64,000 nt of DNA from Salpingoeca rosetta (taxonomy: Eukaryota; Protista; Choanoflagellata), in the NCBI GenBank assembly GCA_033442325.1, contig JAWQFM010000023.1, positions 235,558 to 299,557 of the forward strand. The letters are read 5' to 3'. Numbering within the stretch: the first letter of the stretch is position 1; every line of letters starts with the position of its first letter. Both the position numbers and the translations under genes were made by a program. Below the pieces are notes generated by a model. It saw only the letters and a list, made by a program, of their open reading frames with translations. It did not search any database and was not told the DNA's origin. Shown piece after piece: positions 37,994-39,868 of this stretch.

Positions 37994-38124
37994 CTACAGC
38001 CTCTTCTTGAGGTCCTGGCATTTGCGCTTGAGCCGCTCGTAACGCCATCTTCGGAAGCTGCCGACGGCTTCGCGCAGCTCAAAGCCGGCCACTGCACAAT
38101 AAACAGCGACAATGCGCGCCAACA

Positions 38125-38187
<63 letters not shown>

Positions 38188-38494
38188 GAGACCCCATGTA
38201 TTTGAGAGTGAATGAGCGTGACAGAAAGAGCGAGCGCGCACATGATCATGTGTGTGTGTGTGTGTGTGGACACAGCAGCACGCAAGGTCAAACACAAACG
38301 ACGGGCGCGAAAGAGCAAAGCGATGACACGGACAAGTCCAAGAACAACCACATTATGTCAAAAGCAAGTCGGAAGGATGCAACTGCACGCACTCTGGCGA
38401 GCGTGTATGCACACAAGAGCAGACACTCTGCCTGCGCACCTGTGCCGAGCAGGAATGCGACGACAGCCACCGTGATGACCCCACGCGATTCCAT
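37994..38494 (-). CDS. Mitoregulin (MTLN)-like 50-aa single-pass microprotein, exons 38440-38494 and 37994-38091
   Basis: ATG in a CAAAATGG context and a phase-1 GT-AG intron at 38092-38439. The product is MESRGVITVAVVAFLLGTVAGFELREAVGSFRRWRYERLKRKCQDLKKRL*, a TM helix followed by a basic amphipathic helix. It aligns without gaps to human mitoregulin as recalled from memory. Confidence 0.7.
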
Positions 38495-38581: not shown

Positions 38582-38716
38582 CACACAGAGGGTGGAAAAA
38601 AAATGAATGCGATACTGGGGACAGGGTTGCCGTGCAGGCAGGAGGCACAGTGATGCAGAGGAGCACACACGAAGCAGCACACACAGAGCGTGGAGAAAAA
38701 AAATGAATGCGATACT
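38582..38716. repeat. Direct repeat (22 nt exact, ~35 nt imperfect, 100-nt offset) duplicating the tRNA trailer and oligo-T terminator
   Basis: GAAAAAAAATGAATGCGATACT occurs at 38595-38616 and 38695-38716, each preceded by CACACAGAG(G/C)GTGG. Confidence 0.9.
38696..38703 (-). terminator. RNA polymerase III oligo-T terminator (T8)
   Basis: T8 run 9 nt after the end of the tRNA 5' half on the minus strand. A second T8 lies at 38596-38603. Confidence 0.75.
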
Positions 38717-38798
38717 AGACCGGCGCTATAACCAACTAAGCCACGAGCCCCAATCAAAGGTGAGGGCCCGGTGAGATTCGAACTCACGGCCTCCGGTT
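38713..38798 (-). tRNA. tRNA-Thr(AGT), circularly permuted: 3' half 38798-38763, 12-nt spacer, 5' half 38750-38713
   Basis: Joining GGGCTCGTGGCTTAGTTGGTTATAGCGCCGGTCTAGTA to AACCGGAGGCCGTGAGTTCGAATCTCACCGGGCCCT gives a full cloverleaf. Acceptor stem GGGCTCG/CGGGCCC, D arm, anticodon stem CCGGT/ACCGG, loop CT-AGT-AA, T arm GTGAG-TTCGAAT-CTCAC, discriminator U. Confidence 0.88.
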
Positions 38799-38819
38799 GT
38801 CTGTATCCCTTCCCGTTAA

Positions 38820-38830
38820 CCATTCGGCCA
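38820..38830 (-). promoter_or_regulatory. Pol III A box in the leader of the permuted tRNA
   Basis: TGGCCGAATGG matches the TRGCNNARYGG consensus and starts 47 nt before the B box GTTCGAATC (38783-38775). Confidence 0.65.
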
Positions 38831-39868
38831 ATGGAAATTGTTGTAGATAGCGGAGGAATTTGGATTTTTGAATTGTGTACTGCGTATGTGTGTGTGTGTT
38901 TGTCTGTGTGTGTCTGTGTATGTCTGTGTGTGTCTGTGTATGTCTGTGTGTGTCTGTGTGTCTGTGTCTGTGTGTGTGTGTGTGTCTGTGTATGTCTGTG
39001 TGTGTCTATCTCTGCGTTGTGTCCACCTCTGCGTACTGTGTTACACATCTGTGCGCTTGTTCTCGCTGGTTGACCCTGTCTGCCTGTCTGTCATCGCGAC
39101 GCGACCCCTTTGCAACAGTTCAACGTGTCCAACAGATAGATACCCCGGCACTCCACCAGACCACATGCTCGACCGTCCCATCCCCAGTCTCGGTCTGGCT
39201 CTCTGGCAGGACAATCGAAGAATCGAGTTCGCGTGGGGAGATGACATGCGCGCGCGGGTGCAGCAGAGCAGTGTATTGAGAGCAGGGCAGCAAGGTGAAC
39301 TGCGCGACCTCACAAGAACCACCCTCAACAAGCACTTCCCACGACACAGAAAGCCCAAGCAGTTCTCGGGGCAATCACAGACGCACACATACACATACAC
39401 ACGCACACACACACACACATACACGCGCGCACAAGCACACATACACACGCACACGCGCACACAGATACACGCGCGCACAAGCACACATACACACGCACAC
39501 ACACACAAGCACACACACACACATACACGCACAAATACACATACATAGGACACACTGGAATCGACACGCGTGCGCATCACAGGCATGCACACATCCACGC
39601 AGGTGTACATGTGCACACCATCGACACACATGAACGCAAAAAGGAGCAGTGTTCTGAAAGGCACAAGCCTACCCGCATCGAGTCCCAAGTGAATGTCGCG
39701 CGTGTCCCATAGGCCGAAAAATACATCCACACTCAAACACACGCTGATACACACACATACACACGCGCACACACAGACACACACACATACACGCGCGCAA
39801 ACACACATACATGCACACATACACACATACATGCACACATACACACGCGCGCGCACATGCACACGTGC

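Follow-up and report, generated by a model that had tools for sequence, protein, structure and literature searches.

The window analysed here, a 64,000-nt stretch of contig 23 of the Salpingoeca rosetta assembly, carries on its minus strand a tRNA-Thr(AGT) gene in circularly permuted order. Read 5′ to 3′ on that strand, the 3′ half comes first, followed by a spacer, the 5′ half, a trailer and a T8 run, an order established by script and checked against the sequence (Table 1). The strings and coordinates of both halves, the spacer, the trailer and the T8 run given in a preliminary description of the locus were reproduced base for base. As also stated there, the halves neither overlap nor lack a base, and they break exactly at the canonical intron site, 37/38. 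The T8 run begins 9 nt past A37, and the spacer is free of any T run. The locus lies between long (CACAGACA)n and (CA)n microsatellites, at 38880-39000 and 38120-38300.

Table 1 Features of the permuted tRNA-Thr(AGT) gene, its further copies and the intron-containing tRNA-Gly(GCC) genes; positions are those of the window unless a contig or sequence is named.
Feature	Position	Strand	Remark
CAACAA upstream motif, candidate pol III start-site element	38838..38843	-	Putative function
Leader hairpin	38810..38837	-	Predicted in both diverged leader versions
A-box-like motif TGGCCGAATGG	38830-38820	-	In the 5′ strand of the leader hairpin
Intron-like leader end GGGATACAGAC	38799..38809	-	Proposed removal at the 3′ cut site
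3′ half, nt 38-73, 36 nt	38763..38798	-	Carries the B box GTTCGAATC; same in all three copies
12-nt spacer CACCTTTGATTG between discriminator T73 and G1	38751..38762	-	Proposed removal by tRNase Z/RNase P
5′ half, 38 nt (nt 1-37 plus 20a)	38713..38750	-	True A box and anticodon AGT; same in three copies
Intron-like trailer TCGCATTCA, 9 nt	38704..38712	-	Same in all copies; proposed removal at the 5′ cut site
T8 run, pol III terminator	38696..38703	-	Similar T runs close ordinary tRNA genes here
Second copy of AGTA, trailer and T8	38596..38616	-	End of a ~97-nt tandem unit; seen in the sequence
ATG of downstream protein gene	38494-38492	-	
Permuted copy 1, contig 2	1,298,494-1,298,642	-	
Permuted copy 2, contig 2	1,311,276-1,311,424	+	
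tRNA-Gly(GCC) genes, 108 nt	L032 1126-1233, 1326-1433; L034 1644-1751, 1843-1950		36-37-nt introns at 37/38

Joining the 5′ half to the 3′ half in silico yielded a 74-nt molecule that ARAGORN calls as tRNA-Thr(agt). Its four stems are intact, with a 7-bp acceptor stem (including one U5·G68), a 5-bp anticodon stem and a 5-bp T stem, which bears out the earlier statement that the halves pair fully in the acceptor and anticodon stems. The joined tRNA has nucleotides T8, A14, G18G19, T33 and A37 and a GTTCGAAT T-loop, and it presents the anticodon AGT within a 7-nt loop. The A37|A38 junction thus created, ...GGTCTAGTA|AACCGGAGG, is non-genomic. With the halves in native order, the whole window drew no call from ARAGORN and no match to 4227 Rfam models at gathering score. 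The prediction that standard scans would miss the gene therefore held for both tools, and AGT is likewise missing from the published tRNAscan-SE list.

The genome (68-contig, 55.4-Mb assembly) contains three copies of the permuted unit, one in the window and two on contig 2. The contig-2 copies form the outward-facing arms of an inverted duplication, ~12.6 kb apart and 98.2% identical over 1.9 kb. Since this pair is a recent inverted duplication, the three copies represent two independent lineages. The two halves of the window copy match those of the contig-2 copies at 74/74 positions, whereas the leaders agree at 40/60 positions, with gaps. The spacer measures 10 nt in both contig-2 copies, which lack a TT, versus 12 nt in the window. 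All three copies retain the T8 run, and the trailer, T8 and following 18 nt show a single difference between the loci. By blastn, similarity between the loci ends outside roughly 150-250 nt, microsatellites and the downstream repeat aside. Perfect halves within diverged flanks point to selection, or to selection plus conversion, on both halves. Gene conversion could account for part of the identity of the halves, an effect that active tRNA gene families also typically show. As the unit is found three times with identical halves, the permuted arrangement is not a product of chance. In the contig-2 copies, a (TG)n run directly follows the terminator.

Downstream of each permuted gene lies a tandem array, with 2 units in the window (38596-38712, minus strand) and about 6 on contig 2 (sequence L002, 1610-2240, units of about 95 nt). 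Array units end in the last 4-6 nt of the 5′ half followed by the trailer and T7-T8; each contig-2 unit ends CTAGTA-TCGCAT(T/A)CA-T(7-8). The remainder of the array unit shows no tRNA similarity. The units could serve as back-up terminators or could be mere slippage. They also attest to local duplication activity, and tandem duplication is the standard model for the origin of permuted genes (PMC3978253). Both points would suit a permuted unit that is itself dead, a remnant of tandem duplication or rearrangement, with ACC and ACU codons being read by a tRNA whose gene is unassembled, highly aberrant or otherwise disrupted. Against this stand the perfect conservation of the halves despite the diverged leader, and the T8 run and splice-site geometry kept in all copies.

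A conventional gene for the same tRNA was sought across the genome. The A37-A38 junction sequence had no genome match, and with 2 mismatches allowed there were six, namely Thr(TGT) and five non-tRNAs. The pattern CTAGTR-N14-18-GTTCRANNC gave 0 genome-wide matches versus 19 for the reversed control, and a pattern of the same type with TGT recovered the known Thr(TGT) gene as a positive control. Genome-wide, an intron-tolerant pattern matched only the D-loops of other tRNAs or non-tRNAs and no Thr tRNA, a T32 pattern gave two matches, both non-tRNA, and a GGT pattern gave 24 matches with 0 tRNAs. One candidate on contig 8, TGTCTAGTAAACAGG, resembles the anticodon arm of a normal Thr(AGT) but turned out not to be a tRNA. 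A linear Thr(AGT) gene elsewhere, which the preliminary description had named as evidence against function, did not appear in these pattern searches, which do recover Thr(TGT).

Published gene lists agree. In the tRNAscan-SE 2.0 lists of Southworth et al. (2018; PMC6188563), no AGT anticodon is given for an older S. rosetta assembly or for Monosiga brevicollis; the first AGT anticodon in these tables stands in the section on Capsaspora, which has normal Thr(AGT) genes. The same study singles out threonine in both choanoflagellates as departing from the usual agreement of major tRNA and optimal codon, and its tables give ACC as the preferred Thr codon (PMC6188563). The two assemblies can be related through gene spacing: in ours, the distance between two Thr(CGT) genes is 11,145 nt and a trio of Lys(CTT) genes is spaced at 758 and 7,302 nt. 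Identical spacings in the published S. rosetta table (ACSY01; PMC6188563) mark the genome as that of S. rosetta or a strain nearly identical to it, and so as that of a choanoflagellate, as the preliminary description had thought probable. In five long window ORFs, ACC and ACT together make up 306 of the 708 Thr codons. Eukaryotic ACC and ACU codons are read by tRNA-Thr(IGU), which is made from AGU. With no other gene found, the permuted genes are thus the only visible source of an essential tRNA. Also against a dead remnant, no other Thr(AGT/GGT) gene was found in the 68-contig assembly or is listed for the older one, and M. brevicollis has the same gap (PMC6188563).

The preliminary description also proposed looking for further permuted tRNAs. 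We searched the genome for a B box followed by an A box within 25-45 nt, a design that covers breaks within the A-to-B interval, regular T-loops and short spacers. With GTTCGA as the B-box core, 24 matches were obtained versus 58 for the control, and acceptor complementarity was confined to the three Thr copies; with GTTCAA, there were 19 matches versus 34 for the control, none of them tRNA-like by eye. Only the three Thr(AGU) copies emerged within this box-to-box search space. Metagenomes yielded 15 matches to a B box, 25-55 nt and a Thr D-arm; the nine contigs examined by ARAGORN, most of them labelled human-gut, proved to be bacterial or phage tandem tRNA arrays (for example, Gly-Arg-His-Gln) and were rejected. 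Among the other tRNA genes of S. rosetta, one with the Leu anticodon TAA (L012 1501-1572) has the acceptor and D-arm start of an alanine tRNA (GGGCCCT-TAGCTCAGTGGTAGA versus GGGCCCA-...) and no T run within 25 nt downstream. The accessible part of the S. rosetta table S4b lists four tRNA-Phe(GAA) genes, all flagged as putative pseudogenes, and two Thr(TGT) genes 96 nt long (PMC6188563).

For the geometry of the splice sites, both leader versions were folded with the cloverleaf enforced. In both constrained folds, the anticodon stem is followed by a 3-nt bulge of A(-2), C or A(-1), and A38, which contains the 3′ cut site and is closed by C32:G(-3) and then T33:A(-4). In the same folds, A34 has no partner and faces 0 nt (window copy) or 2 nt (contig-2 copies), and G35-T36-A37-T(+1)-C(+2) forms five pairs with leader GATAC in both versions. 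This GATAC/GTATC helix is retained in the unconstrained MFE and centroid structures. The three elements noted earlier for the window copy are therefore predicted in both leader versions: C32 paired with G(-3), a bulge of 3 nt and a helix across the 5′ cut site. The 5′ cut site is predicted to lie inside the 5-bp helix and not in a bulge, so that the motif is relaxed and not a canonical bulge-helix-bulge.

A pyrimidine-32:purine(-3) pair with a 3-nt bulge is reported, by Baldi et al. in 1992 and Di Nicola Negri et al. in 1997, to be required for 3′ cleavage by the eukaryotic splicing endonuclease in the mode in which the mature domain serves as its ruler. Such a pair beside a 3-nt bulge, as substrates of this mode need, is predicted in both leader versions. 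With its acceptor stem closed by the spacer, the mature domain would be intact. Genes for the enzymes are present: two tRNA_int_endo catalytic domains (Sen2- and Sen34-like) are encoded, as is a single multi-exon RtcB gene.

Ordinary introns of S. rosetta offer a direct comparison. The permuted leaders end CAGAC|A and CAGAA|A and the tRNA-Gly(GCC) introns end CAGTG|C, with CAG at -5 to -3 in common. The tRNA-Gly(GCC) genes also share with the permuted genes the break at 37/38 and the pyrimidine-32:purine(-3) pair closing a 3-nt bulge, and the same enzymes would be expected to process both. In the permuted gene, the 'intron' consists of the two transcript ends, so that ligation would close a circle whose acceptor ends are opened afterwards, unlike in tRNA-Gly(GCC). 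The tRNA-Gly(GCC) genes stand in tandem pairs beside tRNA-Asn genes; the two intron sequences in L032 differ, yet both end CAGTG|C.

The leader holds candidate transcription signals. In the window copy, the A-box-like motif begins 32 nt upstream of the 3′ half and matches T-R-G-Y-N-N-A-R-Y-G-G, the pattern of real A boxes here, such as TGGCGCAATGG of tRNA-Arg; this pattern has 6 occurrences in 128 kb (the window, both strands), or 4.7e-5 per position. The distance from the first T of the motif to G53 is 47 nt in the window leader versus 46 nt in the joined tRNA. The contig-2 leaders contain only the weaker TAGCCGCAAGG, 49 nt from G53, and the motif is thus strong only in the window copy. At both loci, (A)CAACAA lies a few nt 5′ of the A-box-like element. 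AACAA is found within 20 nt upstream of 8 of the 24 distinct ordinary tRNA genes of the genome. Many ordinary tRNA genes (L012-L071) have (A)CAACAA or AACAAG ending some 6-8 nt upstream of +1, and these motifs recall the CAA start-site motif of plant tRNA genes. No TATA-like element was found in the region upstream of the permuted gene.

The leader hairpin has z = -2.35 and -2.57 in the two leader versions. Its inner stem differs between them by one T-A to G-C change and one G·U to A-U change; the outer stem is built from non-homologous bases in the two versions and was left uncounted. It is moderately supported that the leader supplies the A-then-B order for TFIIIC, which would possibly be a new feature. 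We also considered the leader as a decayed Thr 5′ half, but local alignment was no better than shuffles (1232 and 2196 of 5000 score as well). As the leader taken as a whole shows no significant similarity to the true 5′ half, its derivation from a decayed upstream tRNA copy lacks sequence support; only the A-box/D-loop-like stretch of the leader resembles a tRNA.

RNA reads were taken from three stranded 2026 runs (X21, X22 and X23), as raw, ordinary 101-nt pairs, a library type that rarely captures tRNAs. First mates lie on the plus strand in all three runs, which for the usual library type indicates minus-strand RNA, that is, the strand of the gene. Collinear reads cover the 3′ half, spacer and 5′ half at a depth of 5-20. 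The reads of X21 and X22 have the 12-nt spacer, whereas in X23 the 10-nt version found on contig 2 is present in 10 of 19 reads; with both spacers present in RNA, both loci are transcribed. In addition, an 860-nt contig from an unrelated 2022 run spans the unit in its contig-2 version (10-nt spacer). The possibility of misassembly, raised in the preliminary description, could thus be checked directly: collinear raw reads of three runs and a contig from an independent run span the junctions. With both spacer versions recovered, the chance of an assembly artefact is negligible.

Read coverage drops to zero between 38790 (X21) and ~38830 (X23), just downstream of the CAACAA motif, and this loss suggests that transcripts start near the leader. 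At the other end, some reads extend beyond T8 into downstream sequence, where a protein gene on the same strand begins ~200 nt past the tRNA terminator; its ATG is followed by the signal-peptide-like MESRGVITVAVVAFLLGT and then by a GT donor. Because some reads pass T8 and an mRNA gene adjoins, the collinear reads are not assignable to pol III, and part of the collinear RNA may represent pol II transcription, for example from upstream starts of the neighbouring mRNA. Depth climbs to ~200 in the presumed 5′ UTR of this gene, which overlaps the repeat units, a value that also counts reads from roughly ten similar contig-2 repeat units.

Pol II-like read-through RNA and a depth that rises towards the mRNA start would be expected if the locus were not a tRNA gene at all but part of a 5′ UTR or promoter region belonging to protein genes nearby, or if it gave rise to small RNAs resembling tRNA halves. 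We consider this highly improbable, as it leaves unexplained both the missing essential tRNA and the presence, at three loci with unrelated flanks, of conserved complementary halves with full invariants. Reads across A37-A38, circles or CCA ends were not reported in the three ordinary RNA-seq libraries, which are uninformative for 76-nt modified RNAs; because such libraries do not capture these RNAs, the mature tRNA is unobserved rather than disproved. The lack of an observed mature RNA, in ordinary RNA-seq only, would also fit a dead remnant, which the conservation and the missing alternative gene described above render very unlikely.

Conservation, the absence of another Thr(AGT) gene, the splice-site geometry and the reads all support the proposal of a functional permuted tRNA in a close relative of animals. 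We conclude that the locus is very probably a functional circularly permuted tRNA-Thr(AGU) gene, one of three in S. rosetta. With the halves written back to front, a working tRNA requires cutting, re-joining and trimming of the RNA, and by analogy with known permuted genes we infer a pathway through a circle. Pol III would start near CAACAA, transcribe the leader, 3′ half, spacer and 5′ half, and stop at T8; the B box in the 3′ half, together with the A-box-like element of the leader at normal spacing, may give TFIIIC its A-then-B order. The halves would then fold into a cloverleaf whose acceptor stem is capped by a 10-12-nt loop, the spacer, and leader and trailer would pair like an intron, placing the 3′ cut site in the 3-nt bulge closed by C32:G(-3). 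Cleavage by the tRNA-splicing endonuclease after A37 and before A38 would free the trailer and the leader, and RtcB would ligate A37 to A38, so that tRNA and spacer form one circular RNA. The spacer would be excised by RNase P and tRNase Z, CCA would be added, and deamination of A34 to inosine would allow the tRNA to read ACC and ACU.

A functional tRNA could also arise with no circle, if RNase P and tRNase Z cut out the spacer first and the paired pieces were then joined in trans, much as in split tRNAs. In fungi, end-processing usually precedes splicing, and once the spacer is removed, pairing in the acceptor (7 bp) and anticodon (5 bp) stems could keep the two halves in contact. We nevertheless consider this order of events unlikely, as a two-piece intermediate would be more fragile and the permuted pre-tRNAs of Cyanidioschyzon merolae, where examined, mature via a circular intermediate (PMC3978253). 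Beyond S. rosetta, we tentatively suggest, as a possibility short of a firm expectation, that the permutation is old and choanoflagellate-wide, that the leader mimics a 5′ half for TFIIIC and pol III, and that TSEN and RtcB routinely make an essential tRNA via a circle; the reason for extending the permutation to choanoflagellates is that M. brevicollis is without a scanner-visible Thr(AGT) gene.

Permuted tRNA genes with a 37/38 junction are known from C. merolae, prasinophytes, the Bigelowiella natans nucleomorph and Thermofilum pendens (PMC3978253, PMC3218864, PMC13578239). The S. rosetta gene resembles those of C. merolae in having the 3′ half before the 5′ half on one strand and a T-stretch past the 5′ half (PMC3978253), as well as an intron-mimicking leader and trailer, a junction at the canonical site and a tRNA that is not supplied by another gene. 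The intervening sequence at the acceptor end measures 7-74 nt in C. merolae (PMC3978253) versus 10-12 nt in S. rosetta. C. merolae has many permuted tRNA species, whereas the box-to-box search gave one in S. rosetta, an opisthokont. Upstream of the S. rosetta gene there is no TATA-like element; it has CAACAA and, at normal distance from the B box, an A-box-like motif, whereas transcription in C. merolae is presumed to do without TFIIIC (PMC3978253). It further differs in that its 5′ cut site is placed in a helix, and in being known from the gene and collinear reads.

The genes of Ostreococcus, Micromonas and the B. natans nucleomorph, as far as they are described in sources citing Maruyama et al. 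(2010), have the same architecture and a presumed pathway of the same kind; by those accounts, they belong to photosynthetic lineages and have AT-rich upstream regions. In T. pendens, as in S. rosetta, the permuted tRNAs have unique anticodons and are missed by standard scanners (Chan, Cozen and Lowe 2011; PMC3218864). Being the sole carriers of their anticodons, the genes of both organisms must be expressed. T. pendens differs in its archaeal promoter and in an archaeal endonuclease that requires a strict bulge-helix-bulge.

A 2014 review noted that most eukaryotes are without permuted tRNAs, though the 37/38 type would be plausible there (PMC3978253), and a 2026 review of permuted tRNAs covers algae and archaea only. 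Our full-text literature search returned no paper linking permuted tRNAs with choanoflagellates; the papers that mention both permuted tRNAs and opisthokonts concern other subjects according to their titles and abstracts. The search likewise gave no opisthokont report of a permuted tRNA, in keeping with the preliminary description, and within reach of the literature searched this is the first such gene found in an opisthokont.

Permuted genes, until now believed to be limited to one archaeon, a nucleomorph and a small number of algae, thus extend to the sister group of animals, where a splicing endonuclease and an RtcB ligase of the animal type very probably accept a permuted substrate. The permuted genes would also account for an anomaly in published data, namely that two choanoflagellates seem to lack their major threonine tRNA (PMC6188563). 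For S. rosetta, tRNA gene counts, codon-adaptation indices and the codon optimisation of transgenes are based on a tRNA set that is incomplete. As a genetically tractable organism, S. rosetta lends itself to work on the transcription and maturation of permuted genes. A hidden tRNA-Thr isoacceptor is also relevant to choanoflagellate work on the tRNA-Thr proofreading factor ATD (PMC7302879); the permuted tRNA-Thr(AGT) has C4-G69 and U5·G68, not G4·U69.
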